From contig ADNK01003441.1 of assembly GCA_000320545.1 (NCBI GenBank), positions 1 through 41,267 on the forward strand: a stretch of DNA of 41,267 bases, given 5' to 3'. Position numbers and translations under genes: made by a program. Position 1 is the first letter of the stretch; the number at the start of each line of letters is the position of its first letter. The DNA is from Bigelowiella natans CCMP2755 (Eukaryota; Protista; Cercozoa). Below are positions 21,440 to 30,624 of this stretch, one piece after another. The notes under the pieces are model-generated. The model had not been told where the DNA came from, made no database searches, and was given only the letters and a program-made list of their open reading frames with translations.

Positions 21440-23192
21440 TTACATAACAGCGCAACTATGATGATGGTGCCTTCGTCCTTTTCTTATTATGCACACCAGA
21501 GAATTTTCATTTTTCTTCACATCTCTCTGGAATAAGCACGCTTCTCGGTAGTCCTGAAGCATAAGCTGAACACAGAAAACGTGCTTCTTCCAAGAGTTCT
21601 CGCACCATTTATTACCGGCAGCGTATGCTAGCACTTTACTCATTCCAGCCACAAGACTGTGACGAAAGGATCCCATATTCGATGCTTCAGCAACATTAAG
21701 AGTTAACTCGCCCATTTCCTTGCGAAGGTTTCGCACTCTCTCAAAATCTTGGTCCGTTTGCCAGATACGAATGCATTTAAAAAACCACATAAAAATCTCT
21801 TCTAGGTGATCGACTGCGTTTTCCTTCTTTCTTTGGAGCTTTGTAAGGCAATGTATCCAGTCGTTGCGGTCTTTTTCATCTTCTGCAGCTAACACATACT
21901 CGTTGATTTTACCCTTTTTCGTCGGCGACTTGCCCTTGATGAAGAAGCAGTTGTGAGATAAGTAGTCATCGTCGAGACGGCCTTTAAGTTCATCGTCATC
22001 TTCAAGCGGTACGACGTGAGCATCTTCAAGAATAATGGCCTGGGCGAGTGATGAATTTTCCTCTTCCATACCTGCCCTGATGAAGATGAAATGCATGCCT
22101 CCTTCATACATGTCGCTGTTGATATCACTGGCATTAGATTTTGCAGCCACTTCGTCGCGTAGCACTTGAATCCTCCACTCCATGATCGAGGGATCGCTTG
22201 AGGAGAAGCACGATCGCGATACATGAATATTATTCTTCCTTCTCCTCCTCCTTCTACGATGTGAAATAGGAACTGCTGTGAGGGTGCCATGTTTTAGGTA
22301 TTTCTCTGGTTGGCGAGGTAGGCTGTACAGCGTCGCCACCACCTCGGGGTTCGTCTCCCACAGCACTTCGTAGAGAAGGCCATGGAGCACGTTTGCAGGG
22401 AACCTGTTCTCGATGTAGTCAATAACATCGTTAAGCTCGGAAATGACCGATTCATAGTCGGGAAAGAGGGCGTCACCAACATGCAGCAGTATTTCGGTCT
22501 CTATGGCGTCGTAAATAGGCAGCGGGAACTTTCTTCGGACGGATTCATGTGTGGAGAGCGCTTCCGACATGATCGTGTTCAATCCTTTCGCGCTGCGGAA
22601 CTTCGAATTGAGGTTCATATTCTTAAGCTCGAGTCCCCCTTCATCATCGTCATCGCTGAAGTGCTCCCGAAGAATAGCCCGTGTCTTCACTGTACATGCG
22701 TATCGGATTTCATTAATTTTGCATAGCAGACGTGACTCCGCCTGGAAACCTTTATTCTCCATAACCCTCTGGATAGTCTTCGACCATGTACACTGATTTC
22801 CCAAGATCAGTTTATAAAATTCCAAGTCTCGCTTTCGCTTAGGGTTTAACTTCGGTGAAGACGTCGAGATCTCTTCTCGCGGGGATGGTGCAATTTCTTT
22901 CCCTCTTTTTACAGGAAGGGGCATGGGTTTGAATGGTTGTTTCACCTCAGCATCGCCCTGCTTTTCCCTCTTCAACGTTGTGGGAAATTCTTTCCCCTGA
23001 TCATCCCGCCCGAACACATAGCTTGTGCCGGCGTAGCGCGTCGCGAAATGACGAAAGACAACATTGAAGATAAATCCCAAAAAGGCCTTGGTAACAAGCA
23101 AAATGTTAACTAATGACATTCACAACTGTAAAGAACTGAGCAACACTAACCATTACGGCCAAAATAGCAGATTTCCCGATAGCTTCCATCAT
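21440..23192 (-). CDS. N-terminally membrane-anchored PH-domain protein
   Basis: A short exon MMEAIGKSAILAVM (from 23192) splices to AFLGFIFNVVFRHF.. in the 559-codon ORF 21440-23119. The PH C-terminal signature is QAIILEDAHV..HNCFFIK..EYVLAAEDEKDRNDWIHCL. Confidence 0.75.
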
Positions 23193-23551
23193 CTCAAACC
23201 GAGTAATGGCTCGGGTCAATGGGAAAGAGGGAGCTAGTGTGTGCTTTAATATGTGCAAGCTTCTTCTCCCAAAAAACATAGGCGATTTATGTTCTAAAAC
23301 AGCAGGATGATAGCTAAGGACAGAGAAGAATGCCTTTGGATGACATCCAGGTTTATTTCCCTAAAAAACGTCTTCTGCTGTGTACGATTTTACGACCCTT
23401 TTTACGACAAATTGAGGGAAAATTCAAAGGGAGTTTCCCAAAAATGGAAAATTTTCAAATAAAAATATTCAGACAAGTGGTGCATGTCGTAGGTAATAAA
23501 TGCCCTCCCAGTTTGTTTTCATATTTCATAACGTGAGGAGAAGTGGAGGCC
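23193..23551. promoter_or_regulatory. Putative bidirectional promoter rich in GGGAAA/TTTCCC
   Basis: The nearer start codons diverge from this spacer. The hexamer occurs at 23221, 23356, 23416 and 23434, plus 23172 just inside the first exon of the - gene. Confidence 0.45.
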
Positions 23552-24233
23552 ATGCCCTCTTTCCTCCCAGTGGCCATTGTCTTAGCCATCTCGCATTGCC
23601 TCCCTGTCCATGCTTCCATCATCGAGCTGAGGGCAGGAAATGTTGATACCGAAAAGACTAAAGAAATCCCTCAGCTAGAGGTGGTTAAGAGATTTTAGGA
23701 AGGATCACACAAACGTCATCTGGAATGCATGATCTTCATGTCAATACCTTACTTCTTGCCCCCTTCATGATCAAGGTGTCACTCCAAGACGAGGAGCAGC
23801 GACCATACCTTATTAATCTTAAGGAGGTCAACGAGGTCGATTTCGATGGTGCATGCCAGTTTTAGGGAGGGGATGAAAGACAGACTTGTTGTCTGGACCA
23901 CTGTCATTGTACATGACACGCTTATTTTTGTTACTACTTTGTCAGGATATCAAGAAATCCATTTCTAACATTATCCACGAAAGCTTAGAAGGTACGTTTG
24001 GTTGAAGACAGTGATAGCACAAACGGTGAATTTTCCCACCCATGATCTCTTTGCTGCTGCTGCTCTCCCTCTTTATGCGCATTCGATCAGAATACATACC
24101 AGAAAATACGTTCGTCATCTTGGCAAGCCACCCTGAAATATATGAAATCCAGAAACTTCCTGGTGTAGCATGGGGTAATTTGATTGTAAATCTACTGCGT
24201 TCATCTGCCTGCACATTAAAATCTCTCTCTCTA

Positions 24234-24271
<38 letters not shown>

Positions 24272-24377
24272 GTAAATGTCAGTAATGGTACAAAATATAA
24301 GTAGTTTCATGTGAAATATGTATTTTGAAGCAAATTTTCCTCATATTTGATACCTTAGTGCGGACATGTGTGTATGT

Positions 24378-24415
<38 letters not shown>

Positions 24416-24584
24416 ATCCACCAGTCGGAGACTACAAACCGGGGTATAAAGTTTCGCCAGATATAGGGAAAGTAAGATATAAAGTTTGACTATGATCATC
24501 CACAAAGAATAATATGCTACTATTTACTCTTGGATATTTTCGGATGCAAAGATGTGTGAGTGTGAATGTGAGCATGGACATATG

Positions 24585-24652
<68 letters not shown>

Positions 24653-25197
24653 TGTACAAAGGGCGCAAGGAAGTTGACCGTACTTCTGGGACACGATATG
24701 CATCGGGGTGAGGAAGAATCATTAAGATTTGCGCAAATACTATCGGAATCCTGCAAGATTACAGCAACCATGGCAACGTCCAAGACGTTACTACTTTCGT
24801 TGAAGGATGAGCAGGACGCACTCAAGGTAGCATTCATAATAATAGAAATTACGACATGTCCGCACGAGATACAAGAGAGTAAGACCACATTTATGCGTCT
24901 ATACTCGCTATTGTGGTTTCTTTTTCCTGGAACAAATACACGAAAATAGTACGGCCCGAATAGGCAATCCAGAAACATACGACTGATACTTAATCGTCAT
25001 CTACAGATTGCATCGTGTACCTCCAATCATCATCCTGTTCTGTGGATTGAAGAACGCAAAGACGTGAAGGTGTGGTCAGCCCCTACAACGGGGAGCACCC
25101 ACAATTTACACGATCCCGCCACGGAAATACATTTTCGCAGCACAGACCTTTAGGGTGCACACTTACAACATGCAGCCCATCCGATGTATGTTTATGA
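23552..25197 (+). CDS. Secreted protein of about 213 aa resembling the prodomain of KP-43/TagC-type S8 subtilases; no catalytic domain found
   Basis: Exons 23552-23680, 23776-23826, 23946-23991, 24091-24174, 24425-24471, 24662-24826, 25007-25069 and (tentative) 25141-25197. They give signal peptide MPSFLPVAIVLAISHCLPVHA, then SIIELRAGNVDT..RPYLINLKEDIKKSISNIIHESLEEYIPENTFVILASHPEIYEIQKLPGVAWVGDYKPGYKVSPDI..LTVLL..IASCTSNHHPVLWIEERKDVK. Confidence 0.7.
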
Positions 25198-26147
25198 AGA
25201 AACACAAATCGTAGCAAGTCAATTGCATTACATGCAATTGCTTTGTCCACAAACAAATATAGCATACAAGCAACATGAAAGCGCGCCAAAAAGAAGCAAA
25301 TAATGCACGGTTAATCTGTTGTGCTGGCACAGCGTGTGCAAAAAAACTCGATGATTGATGACAACACGTGCATGCACACCCGCCACAGCCAGACAGCTTA
25401 GCTAGCTAGCGCTAGAGCGTACCTTTGTTCTTGTAATCGTCAGCACGTACTTGCTGTGACGGTAATTAATGACGACAACATTGTCAAGCTAGCAGAGCTA
25501 GAGAGAGCTAGAGAGTGTCAGGATTGTGGAGCATGCAGGATCGTATCATGTTTGCACACACATGCGCACGCATTGAATTCTAGAATTAGGTGCTATGACT
25601 AAATGATGCACACACACCGACACGCACGTGTGCAAAATTTGCATGATACACGTTGTGCATTGCACGTGAAAAATGTGCCCCGTGTCCATTCTGGCATTGA
25701 TGCAGCCCACGTCCGCAGCACATTTGCTTGCGCTTGTTCATTGCCATGTTGCTCAGTCATGCACTTGTTCATCACGCTCTGAGCCATTCACGAGTGCATT
25801 ACATCGCTGCACCACAAGTGGCCTCTGCACCAAACGTTGTGCGTTCCACTCCCACGGTGTGCACGTCTGTGTGTGAGAGGCCATGACGGACACAGTGATG
25901 TGACTCACATGATACACATGAAATGTTGCGTTGTCTATCATAGACACATTAATGTAATATATCACATGTATGTAATGTTACGTTGTCTGTCATGGCTGCT
26001 CACAATCGCGATGACACCACGGGTGAGTGTTCGACGTTTGCACAGGACAGACAAGGAGGATTGGTGTTGTTGTGAACGTACGAATTGCGAACAACCGAAA
26101 GCGGCGAGTTCACTCACATTGCTCCGTTGGTGGTGGGGAAAAATCAC

Positions 26148-26716
26148 TTAGCTTCTTCCGGCTTTCACAAATGGCTTCAGTGTGAGCCAGCCTGACCCTG
26201 TGCACAACCCTTCGATCGCAAAAACCGGCACCAGAAATTGCACAGGTTTCCTGCACGAACCATTTTGTTTGATCTTCGTGAGACTTTTCAACTTGGCAAG
26301 TACCAGAGACTTCGTTGCTCCACATTGAGAGCGCAAGGAAGATGCTTTTGGTTTGGCAATGCAAGAACCCCACGCGACGCCACATTGAAGACCATTGGTT
26401 TCTTCTCCGACAGGGCTGACCGAGAGCCGAACACCCAAATTCCTCCTAAAATAAGCGATCCTCCTTGTCGCAGTATAGAAATCATGAAGTGAGAAGACTG
26501 GAACCAAGAACTCCACGCGTTCCTGGAATGAGACAATGAATATGGGAAGACGCAAGGACTAAAACGACGGGGAATTATCAAGAAAAATGACTTGAATCCC
26601 CGAAATCTCAAGGGCTTTTTGTGTAAGAGGAAAGAGCAGATTTCCGTGCCCCCCCCTCTCTTCATTCTCCCCTCCGGGTCACACCAGAACACAACAGTAA
26701 AGAAGGCGTTTTCCAT
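26148..26716 (-). CDS. Candidate small hypothetical protein
   Basis: Overlapping open frames 26148-26555 and 26288-26734 with a credible GT-AG junction near 26250-26300. The terminal segment is KPVQFLVPVFAIEGLCTGSGWLTLKPFVKAGRS*. The true frame is ambiguous. Confidence 0.35.
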
Positions 26717-26721
26717 ATAAG

Positions 26722-28098
26722 ATGCACTTATCACCCTCCTTCCTGCTTCTGTGCTTCGTGGTCGTCGGTGGAAAGGGCAGCTTAGGGTCTCACACGTCGA
26801 TGCTGCGTCGTGTGTCGCCCGCAGTGGCCGCTACCCCGACCGATCGCTCGTTGAGCATTCCGGTCCATGCCAGGGAAGGACTGGTGCAAAGACGGGGTAG
26901 AGCTTCGAATTTTCACAAACTTGATCATGGCGCCCTCTACATAGGGTCGGCACCGAGAAGAAGGTATGAGCCACACAAGAGATAGGTTCGATTGGAACAC
27001 ACGGTAAGATGCACACCTGTCATCAATACCCCCAACCCCTTTTCACATTCAGTTTACGAGCTGGTGCTAGATTAAGCGAGAAGGAGAAAGAGCAGGCTAC
27101 TGACATATCTAAAAAGTGTGTAAGCTCGTCACAAGACTCATTTTGTGGATTTAGATTTGAAAATACGAATGACTCGCGAGAGGGAGAGAGAACCTCATCC
27201 CCCATTTCCACATTCGACCCTACACCCTTACCTCTTCGCGTCCTAATGTTTTTTTCATTTTCGATGTTATGTAGGATGAAGAATGCCGGTTGGAATTGGC
27301 CACTAACGGAGGTCTTCGAGAGCCAGGACTGGGATGAGATTAGAAATGTCAGCGATTACTTTACAAGCGAAATGTGATCGTCATCTTCACTTAGCGGACG
27401 TATTTTTTTTAGGAGCTCGACATGTCCCCGGTGGATGCTTTCTCCCTCGTTGTCTCTGTGACAATATACTTCAAGGCGGCTGCATATGTACGAACCACGT
27501 ATCACTCTGCACACTTACTGCCTTTGAAGCCGATAATGATAGCCCGCGACTTTAATTCCACCTCTTTCTTTCGGCACAGCAGCTACACAGCAAGATTTTT
27601 TTAACCCCCCACCCCGCCGTACCCACCCCGCCGTCTCCTCCCATTACCCCCCATTTTCCAGGTTGCTGCGACCTACCTGAGTTTGCAGATAATCGACGGA
27701 CTTCCGGATGAGGACAACTGGAGCTTCGTGGCCGCCGCTTGTGCGGGATATTTCGGCATTGGGGCTTTCCGTCAGCTGCTGACCCTACGCGCCCAGTACG
27801 AGTTGAACAAGGAAATTCTAAAGCTCGATCGACCCGACGTAATCTTAGCGAGAAGAGACAGCGTTAATGATGATGATAATGATGATGATGATGGTGATGA
27901 TGATGATGATGAATAACAGCCCCCTTTTGCGTGCAAGTCGCGGTTCTTGCGCCGCCTCCGTTGCTGCTCTAATGTAGTCGTTCTTCTCTACCAACGAAGG
28001 AGGTGGTTCGGCAGGCCATGGAAGAAATCAGCGATTCTGGACGCCAGGCAAGGGTGAGCCACAGAATTAGCATTGTTCTCTTGCGAGCGAAGAGGATT

Positions 28099-28140
<42 letters not shown>

Positions 28141-28271
28141 ACCACTGCTGCTGCTCTTTACTGCTCAATGCTACTGCAGGATCGGCAGCTGGCCAAGTTT
28201 AAGACGGGGGCAAAGAACGTGGAGGTTATGCTGCTTATCTTTTCATGAGTAAATGAGAGATTCCTAAAAGC

Positions 28272-28312
<41 letters not shown>

Positions 28313-28559
28313 CAGCTCAGCGAGGTAGTGCCTGCATTTCGGGCGGATAAATTGATTAAAAGCCGTGTTCTTTGTCTCGTCATCGTCATCGTCATCATCA
28401 GTGGGACCCCGAGGGCCTTCTCCCACCCCGTAATGATGAGCCTAGGAGCTTGTTCTGGAGGGACAATGTGGAGGGGAGGAAGGACAAAGATGGTGGTGAC
28501 TCGGTGGGGGAAGGAGGAGGGCTGATTGACGGTACTACTGCTACTAATGCTGCCACTAG

Positions 28560-28595
<36 letters not shown>

Positions 28596-28888
28596 TACTG
28601 TTTGATGTGTGGGACAAATGACACATGGATAGCACAGAAGAGTCAGCTGAGGGCACGGCGATTAAGATTCTCTATGTAAAGCGGTTGGTCAGTTAGCTCT
28701 CCGATACCTTTTTCAATTTTTGAAAGTCGAAAGCTCGACATAAGACAACATTGCTTATCATAATGATCTGTATAATGCATGTTTGTATTTGGGCAAATAC
28801 TTGCTACTGTTTGTAGAGATGTCAAATAACACTGGACAACGTCAGCCTCTCTCTATATAAATATAGATATAAATAAATATATATATAT

Positions 28889-28919
<31 letters not shown>

Positions 28920-30624
28920 TTAATTATTAGTAGTTCGAGTACATACCCCTCCCCCCCCAACTCACACACACACACACACACACACAGCGAGAAAGAGAGA
29001 GGGGGGGGGGGGGGGGGGGAGAAGAGAAAAGCAGTGAACCCGAAACTATTACATCAAAAAAACGTACTATACTCGTCTCTATAAATAATCCCTCCCCATA
29101 TGAAGAAAAAAGAGGAGGAGGAGGAGGAGGATCATTCATTCGCCATCGTCGATCAATGCTATCGTTATATATATCGTATAGGTTGATAGGTTTCGCGATT
29201 TAGTCGTCACGGCGGTGAGGAAGACTGCTGAGAAGACAGCAGCATCAAACAATTCAGAAGGCCCCGCCGCTGCTATGGGGGCGCTTGCCAGGTAGGAAGT
29301 AGTGTGTAAATGGCTATTGCACGATGTTAAGGAGAAAGAGGGGCGAAGGGGAAGGGGTTGTATTTTTATGCTCTCCACTTCCATTCCTTTGCACGTGTTG
29401 CTCTGTATTCGTTCAAAATACCTACCCCCTTCCCAATTACATTTGTCAGCCTCACCGTCAGCATCATCGTCAGCATTGGCAATGTCGTTATAGTTATCAT
29501 TATCAATACTACCATCACTAATAAGCCTCCCCATCGCAATGTCAGCTTGGACACGTTGATGTCGGGCTATACAGCATCTGGCGACGACGACCTAACAGCC
29601 GAGGCACTGGGCGTGGAGGAGGAGCTCTTTGAGGCCGCGAAAAAGCTCTTTCGGAGGTATGATGACCAGTGCAACAACAGACAAAAACCGGAGCAGCAGC
29701 AGCAGCGACGTGAAGAATACGAATAAGAATAAGAAGACGACGATGAAGTTCTGTTGTCAATAAGTAGTATTGCAGCGTATTTAGCGGTTCTCCCACACAA
29801 ATAATAATACGTGAATCTGCTTCTTTTCAATCCCTGCCTGTTCTCCTTCGTATCAGATATGACGACAACGGCAACGATGTGCTGACAATAAGTGAGGTAA
29901 TTCTCCCCTATTCAGTAGGGAAAACCGAGGAGGAGGAGGAGGAGGAGGAGGAGGAGGAGGAGGAGGGGGGGGAGATGGTGATGATGAAGAAGAATTAGGA
30001 GGAGGAGAAGGCGGGGAAAAGGGAAGAAGACATGAAAAAGCTATACACATGATACAGCGGGCGCGATGTGAGCGTATTAGAGTAAAATTAAATCACTATT
30101 GTTTACATTATCAGCTCCGTGAAATGGCCCGAAAATTCGATTTGCACCTCCCAGGCGACGAGGTCGGTAACCATGAGGGGCAGCTTGTTGATTCCTTGCT
30201 TCCTTCCTCCCATTTGTCCTGCTCCTTTGTATAGAGCAGCCTCGTACTCACTGCATAATTTGCCTCACCCATGACATGAGAATATTGCACTGCGAGTTCG
30301 GTTTTCATTTCTGTATTACAACTGTCATTTATCTATCACTCATTCCTCCTCGTCGTCGGCCCCCTCCCCCCTTATTCCGTGTGGTAGGAGCTTTCACTCT
30401 TTGCTGAGGGGTGTGGTAGCAGTGACAACGGGTAGGATGATATCAATGATGACGATGATGATGATGATGATGATGATGGTTAAGAAAAAGAAGAAGAAGA
30501 AGATGGCAATGATAATATTTCGCTGAGAAGATACCGTGTATTCTGATCTAGGGGTCTAAATCGAGCTGATTTCCTCCGATTCTGGGCGGATGCCGAGAAA
30601 GCGTCAGCACTGTCCGAACAGTAG
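26722..30624 (+). CDS. Membrane protein with a signal + transit-like leader, about two central TM helices and a C-terminal EF-hand pair
   Basis: About 16 exons splice in frame from MHLSPSFLLLCFVVVGGKG.. through ELDMSPVDAFSLVVSVTIYFKAAAY | VAATYLSLQIIDGLPDEDNWSFVAAACAGYFGIGAFRQLL.. to LFEAAKKLFRR | YDDNGNDVLTISE | LREMARKF..ELSLFAEGCGSSDNGGLNRADFLRFWADAEKASALSEQ*. The loop DDNGNDVLTISE (exon 29857-29896) is a canonical 12-residue EF-hand. Confidence 0.75.

Follow-up and report, generated by a model that had tools for sequence, protein, structure and literature searches.

Does the gene that begins at position 23552 of a 41,267-nucleotide stretch of chlorarachniophyte DNA (hereafter the window, meaning the whole stretch analysed) encode a subtilase propeptide on its own, or is it the front part of a protease? 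An earlier note on this DNA had proposed either a free prodomain-like inhibitor or a truncated relic. The free-standing prodomain stood up to a profile comparison, to the mapping of the transcript end and to the discovery of a homologue, P0003, and the architecture of this homologue spoke against the relic. Our analysis established that the gene is expressed and maintained and that its product, which is directed to the secretory pathway, corresponds to the long propeptide of KP-43-type S8 subtilases as a free-standing homologue.

The window is eukaryotic in character, with short GT..AG introns and microsatellites within introns. We examined RNA over positions 23250-29200, using one raw run (X21) and the contigs of three other runs (X1, X3 and X5), together from three studies. 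Spliced contigs of 738-767 nt with depths of 60-138 (X1, X3, X5) from the three studies define a gene of seven exons (Table 1), with the ATG at 23552 and a TAG stop at 25151-25153. The coding sequence of 678 nt comprises 225 codons plus the stop, encoding a protein of 225 amino acids; GT..AG borders are found at every intron, and the exon phases are consistent. The frame across several exons, its signal-peptide-like start and the four motifs initially read from the letters are all present: YLINL, EYIPENTFVI, LPGVAW/VGDYKPGYKVSP and HPVLWIEE follow the signal-peptide-like segment in successive exons. The contigs have 47 letters between exon 4 and exon 6, and these, together with the GT..AG sites, gave the position of exon 5. 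This exon has no directly listed joints because of the flanking microsatellites, which were skipped in read mapping: introns 4 and 5 are filled by long (CT)n, (CA)n, (TG)n and (TA)n repeats (24216-24283, 24364-24422 and 24552-24660).

Table 1. Exons and 3' end of the free-standing propeptide gene, in window coordinates
Feature	Position	Strand	Evidence
Exon 1, coding part	23552..23680	+	contigs start at 23543-23557 and splice 23680/23776
Exon 2, VSLQDEEQRPYLINLKEVNE	23776..23835	+	joints 23680/23776 and 23835/23946 in X1, X3 and X5 contigs
Exon 3, DIKKSISNIIHESLE	23946..23991	+	contig joints (23835/23946, 23991/24091); ends in phase 1
Exon 4, (E)YIPENTFVILASHPEIYEIQKLPGVAW	24091..24174	+	contigs, translation; 64% identical to P0003
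Exon 5, (V)GDYKPGYKVSPDIGK	24425..24471	+	contig arithmetic, GT..AG sites
Exon 6, GARKLTVLLGHD...DEQDALK	24662..24826	+	contigs, translation; 42% identical to P0002/P0003
Exon 7, coding part, ...HHPVLWIEERKDVKVW + 25-residue tail + TAG	25007..25153	+	joint 24826/25007; contigs unspliced; P0001 end identical
3' UTR and approximate transcript end	25154..25239	+	contig ends 25218 and 25238; X21 depth

Does the transcript continue into protease exons? Exon 7 is unspliced in all three contigs and ends at 25218-25238. The raw reads of X21, which are 3'-biased, have a depth of 23 in 25041-25239 and of 0.3 in 25240-25438, and those split across the junction of exons 6 and 7 carry exon-6 letters ahead of 25005. 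Because the contigs run on and the read depth falls after 25239, the transcript ends near this position, as placed by contig ends and one 3'-biased read set rather than by mapped poly(A) tails, and it includes no protease exons; no splice departs from exon 7. A splice donor assumed at 25070 (GT at 25071, after ...DVK) is unused, and since the last exon runs past this GT, the protein ends ...VKVWSAPTTGSTHNLHDPATEIHFRSTDL. P0001, the ORF of an MMETSP transcript that is 98% identical to the 3' half of the gene, has the same junction between exons 6 and 7 and the same C-terminus (...RSTDL). The end of the feature, previously drawn at 25197, had thus to be replaced by a stop at 25153 and a 3' end near 25239, according to RNA contigs and raw reads.

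The absence of downstream DTG, HGTH and GTSMA motifs, on which the original proposal relied, extends to all six frames of the whole window: a scan of all 41,267 bases revealed no D[TS]G-, HG[TS]H- or G[TS]SMA-type contexts. Pfam found no Peptidase_S8 match in the window exons or in P0003. The protein lacks the Asp-His-Ser triad motifs of peptidase family S8, and no Peptidase_S8 domain is covalently attached after the propeptide region. It is a propeptide homologue and not a protease precursor. Searching the window exon by exon with tblastn detected no paralogue.

The gene downstream, from about 26627 to beyond 28532, is a separate transcript with at least seven GT..AG introns on the + strand and an RNA depth of 140-346 in two runs; because of the strand of these introns, seen in RNA contigs, it is co-directional and not convergent, as had been supposed. 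It has an ATG near 26722 and a hydrophobic N-terminus, MHLSPSFLLLCFVVVGG, and is not S8-like by motif scan. Between the two genes lies an unspliced RNA contig (25946-26404; depth 4-15 in three runs) without a long ORF; it may represent carry-over DNA, a non-coding RNA or the extended 5' end of the downstream gene. The divergent upstream neighbour (21440-23119, - strand) is a single ORF of 559 amino acids with a PH domain (Pfam E 1e-5).

The assignment to KP-43-type propeptides depends on a premise of the earlier note, namely that such S8 proteases carry a long N-terminal prodomain with the same motif pattern. In a scan with the back-translated motif W[VIM]G.Y.P.YK[LIVMF].P, in which each bacterial and archaeal species was represented by one genome, we obtained at least 120 prokaryotic loci; under uniform base composition we estimate that chance alone would give about 4. 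Among the matches listed, the context V-x-W-V-G-x-Y-x-P-x-Y-K occurs in 119 of 120 ORFs, and in 83 of the 120 the His and Ser motifs of S8 lie farther downstream, at distances of about 170 and 350-400 residues; the ORFs without both motifs are for the most part cut by contig ends. All five ORFs that were checked contain Pfam Peptidase_S8 from residue ~243-256 with no Pfam model upstream, and the solved structures nearest to one of the five are KP-43 (1WMD) and SubHal (5FAX), with E about 1e-77. The S8 motifs, the Peptidase_S8 matches and the nearest structures confirm the premise for KP-43-type enzymes. In the loci L004-L123 (e.g. L041 956-3796 and L123 4304-6547), the ~200-240 residues ahead of Peptidase_S8 have no Pfam model, and this propeptide region is conserved in Chloroflexota, Verrucomicrobiota, Acidobacteriota, WOR-3, Thermoplasmata and Methanosarcinaceae.

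In the window protein, the product of exon 1 begins with the signal-peptide-like MPSFLPVAIVLAISHCLPVHA; after it comes SIIELRAGNVDTEK..., a match to the first part of the S8 N-terminal region. Exons 2 and 3 supply the first strand and helix 1 of propeptide domain 1, the last W of exon 4 together with exon 5 forms the hallmark W-V-G-x-Y-x-P-x-Y-K-V-x-P, and exon 6 provides most of domain 2. The hallmark, which spans exons 4 and 5 as WVGDYKPGYKVSP, agrees with W[VI]G.Y.P.YK[LIV].P, and the frame, intact over all seven exons, retains all eight hallmark residues.

We searched exon by exon for homologues. Exon 6, compared with 1.84 billion representatives, returned only P0001 and P0002, a metagenomic protein of 133 amino acids that is 42% identical to it. 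P0002 led to P0003, a protein of 217 amino acids encoded on a 14-kb contig of NCBI assembly GCA_977009605.1, which we used as a natural full-length proxy for the whole protein. P0003 is an uninterrupted, intronless ORF with a signal peptide and has counterparts of exons 1, 2, 4, 5, 6 and 7 at 36-64% identity, so that the search for prodomain-only relatives suggested at the outset did yield a free-standing one. Its stop lies 11 residues past F206, the P1 equivalent (see below), which follows VVWVEERLENKA. Because its contig is compact and intron-poor and carries SH3 and protein-kinase genes, P0003 comes from another eukaryote. No S8 motifs are present within 10 kb on either side of the P0003 gene (on a 29.6-kb contig of the same organism). 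In five population copies, the 654 nt of the gene contain 2 synonymous changes and 1 non-synonymous change, located in the signal peptide, and the 3' flank contains 7 differences in 131 nt. A free-standing, intronless gene in another eukaryote with no S8 motif within 10 kb indicates that the gene is maintained and is not a fresh relic. RNA is found in three studies, and coding changes in P0003 are few relative to its flank, which speaks against an unexpressed, decaying gene.

Word searches with P0002, P0003 and profile A5 (see below) brought no further members beyond P0003 and apparently partial ORFs. A metagenome scan for EYIPENTF hit a bacterial QueA, a chance match, and tblastn of P0003 against plasmids also gave chance matches only. 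There is no synteny of the upstream neighbours between the window and L002; what adjoins the homologue on L002 bears no relation to the PH-domain ORF. The contig encoding P0002 (L001 1-361) is 98.6% identical to L002 10001-10371 from mid-gene to the 3' UTR, and its upstream part is unrelated or very divergent and has no WVGEYKAEYKVSP motif; L001 may stem from a paralogue, from recombination or from chimeric assembly.

Homology to the protease propeptides was quantified with a profile built from the N-terminal regions of 76 prokaryotic S8 proteases, with the consensus ...IRLKGAEFDT...YYIVQFKGP...NYIPNNAFLVRM...VRWVGEYQPAYKISPEL...VTVLL...EVEWIEPYVEPELH|NEVA...ADTGLDTG. Most of the statistics were computed on P0003 and not on the joined window protein. 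Residues 21-205 of P0003 matched profile positions 17-198 with 66.8 bits, and 20.7 bits were retained when the 13 residues of the selection motif were masked as X, against 7.0 bits for the best of 2000 shuffles. The profile search against S8 prodomain regions that had been recommended therefore came out in favour of homology. In the window protein itself, exon 4 without the motif W scored 9.1 bits (reached by 0 of 2000 shuffles), exon 1 scored 1.3 bits and exon 7 1.5 bits (7 of 2000 each), exon 2 scored -1.3 bits (132 of 2000) and exon 6 scored -1.7 bits (563 of 2000, not significant). The exon matches are collinear along the profile, and the collinear similarity to the KP-43-type propeptide region is carried by P0003 and by exons 4, 1 and 7. 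The P0003 match stops at the junction of propeptide and mature enzyme, equivalent to residue 1 of the KP-43 crystal chain. General domain libraries were blind to this relationship: Pfam Inhibitor_I9 (PF05922) did not match the exons, P0001, P0002 or P0003 even at E up to 10, NCBIfam returned nothing for P0003, and PDB sequence searches with the exons, P0002, P0003 and the family profile gave chance matches only.

Compared with the propeptides of the KP-43 subfamily (Bacillus KP-43, SubHal and bacterial and archaeal homologues), the protein shows collinear homology over ~185 residues at an identity to prokaryotic members of only 14-25%. Shared with them are the motifs I-x-L-(R/K)-x-G..D, Y-I-P-x-N-x-F, W-V-G-x-Y-x-P-x-Y-K-x-x-P and V-x-W-I-E, the signal peptide ahead of these and the end of the match at the junction with the mature enzyme. 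Unlike them, the protein has no Peptidase_S8 in its transcript or in the window, belongs to a eukaryotic host and continues after P1 with a non-homologous tail of 25 residues.

To examine the fold, which was obtained on the homologue P0003 and not on the joined window protein, we used alignment A5, composed of P0003 and the 76 S8 N-terminal regions. The AF2 model (pLDDT 83.3, pTM 0.75) has two tandem domains plus an N-terminal hairpin. A model from a 7-row alignment reached a pLDDT of 36, and a fold search with it gave generic ferredoxin-like matches only. The P0003 model superposes on S8 peptidases of 779-984 aa in the ESM Atlas with TM 0.69-0.73 over 178-186 residues. Among 48,161 PDB representatives, subtilase propeptides or their mimics fill at least 14 of the best 50 rows: the PCSK9 prodomain (VIA-align Z 8.1), pro-subtilisin E (7.2), the BPN' prodomain (7.0), the PC1/3 prodomain (6.8) and POIA1 (6.1), as well as Tk propeptides, EpiP, fervidolysin and cucumisin. 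Both domains of the model contribute to these propeptide matches at Z 6.1-8.1, a range in which values of 6-8 are ordinary for ferredoxin-like folds. Nor do the structural matches count as evidence separate from the sequence homology, since S8 propeptides made up the AF2 alignment. Independently of the AF2 model, ESM sequence features placed CspB_prodomain in 11 of the 20 nearest clusters; those of P0002 pointed to serpin fragments, which we treated as chance. There is no solved two-domain propeptide among the structures searched, where Foldseek against the PDB gave tandem ACT-domain proteins at TM 0.2-0.3. Structure prediction, also proposed as a check at the outset, thus agrees with S8 prodomains, with the P0003 model superposing on S8 N-termini and resembling solved propeptides.

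Where would such a protein meet a protease? In the profile alignment, residue 1 of the KP-43 crystal chain (NDVARG..., 1WMD) aligns with the Asn immediately after the segment of WIE plus eight residues. This alignment, combined with the mature N-terminus in the KP-43 structure, places the propeptide P1 at a Trp in the window protein (codon 25073-25075) and at Phe206 in P0003. The segment V-x-W-[IV]-E-E-R-x5-aromatic is conserved in both proteins and is the site where the propeptide threads into the protease active site. Past P1, the tails of 25 residues (window protein) and 11 residues (P0003) are mutually unrelated.

We consider it probable, at roughly 0.6 and by analogy with characterised propeptides, that the protein functions as an inhibitor or regulator of one or more subtilases. 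It would bind tightly, in the manner of a substrate, to subtilases of the alga itself or of foreign origin and inhibit them, with domain 2 docked on the enzyme and the WIEERKDVKV-W segment in the S-subsites, its Trp at P1. Inhibition would then resemble that by cleaved propeptides and by the free-standing mimics POIA1, Pbi2, SPI-1, TgMIC5 and SUB1-ProM, which are potent subtilase inhibitors (PMC6993865).

An alternative explanation is that the protein acts in trans as a folding chaperone for a propeptide-less KP-43/TagC-type protease encoded elsewhere, with inhibition as a transient by-product. The whole two-domain region is kept collinearly, including the N-terminal hairpin and domain 1, beyond the domain 2 that binds the protease, and a KP-43-subfamily enzyme without its N-terminal domain is inactive, for which its authors suggested a possible need of the domain in folding (PMC11982257). 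However, inhibition by the free-standing mimics characterised so far is described as not depending on a chaperone activity (PMC6993865), and we regard a chaperone as unlikely. Just as unlikely is the recruitment of the propeptide fold for a job unrelated to proteases, such as a secreted binding or scaffold protein, in which case the similarity would reflect ancestry. The lack of significant similarity of exon 6, and with it of most of domain 2, to the prokaryotic profile would fit this explanation, but both eukaryotic proteins have kept the hallmark residues, V-x-W-[IV]-E-E and an aromatic P1, and the kept hallmark and V-x-W-[IV]-E-E are the parts expected to contact a protease. A stricter form of the chaperone model would regard the subtilase as split in two, with this protein as its detached half: acting in trans, it would be the folding catalyst on which a KP-43/TagC-type protease encoded elsewhere, with no propeptide of its own, depends. 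This seems rather improbable; if it were true, the time and place of secretion of the free propeptide would control protease activity. A transcribed, functionless relic of a truncated subtilase gene is very improbable: the protein does coincide exactly with the N-terminal part of a protease precursor, with a stop shortly past the junction, and the family is tiny in public protein collections, but a diverged, intronless homologue elsewhere has the same architecture and stop region and an intact signal peptide, its coding diversity is low relative to its flank, the window frame and hallmark are intact, and RNA depth is steady in three studies.

Subtilase control by free-standing propeptide mimics is recurrent, and such proteins are already known from fungi, plants and parasites (POIA1, Pbi2, SPI-1, TgMIC5, SUB1-ProM). 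To our knowledge, the known mimics are single I9-type domains. POIA1 (Pleurotus), Pbi2 (yeast) and SPI-1 (Arabidopsis) are single domains of ~76 residues, whereas the present protein has two tandem domains plus a hairpin, of which domain 2 in the P0003 model aligns with POIA1 from its complex with subtilisin (Z 6.1 over 70 residues, within the ordinary range given above); unlike these three, it descends from a KP-43-type propeptide and is undetected by Pfam Inhibitor_I9. Plasmodium SUB1-ProM and Toxoplasma TgMIC5 are free-standing subtilisin propeptide-like proteins of the secretory pathway that regulate an endogenous subtilase (PMC6993865). Like the present protein, both are free-standing, secretory-pathway proteins of unicellular eukaryotes, but lineage and propeptide type differ, and SUB1-ProM adjoins subtilisin genes, whereas no S8 gene occurs in the 41-kb window or within 10 kb of P0003.

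Three features are new: the propeptide is of a long two-domain KP-43 type outside Pfam coverage, it occurs in a chlorarachniophyte and in another microbial eukaryote, and no protease gene lies next to it. In both hosts, the complete two-domain propeptide of KP-43 type has been kept as a gene of its own. Annotation pipelines entirely miss free-standing proteins of this type, and Pfam has no model either for the ~200 residues that precede the catalytic domain of many S8 proteases from bacteria and archaea. KP-43-type enzymes include detergent proteases and putative bacterial virulence factors. If the protein is an inhibitor, it would offer a natural, specific inhibitor scaffold for these enzymes and a handle on protease regulation in chlorarachniophytes.

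Two prokaryotic ORFs with the N-terminal motif, L047 3795-4820 in an Acidobacteria MAG and L120 2298-3596 (- strand), stop ~93-96 residues past the motif, at the propeptide end. Neither has a Pfam match, and no catalytic His or Ser motif occurs within 3 kb downstream of either. A convergent uvrA follows the L047 ORF, and a lone Asp-type motif lies downstream of the L120 ORF. With these two candidates, free-standing propeptides probably exist in prokaryotes, too.
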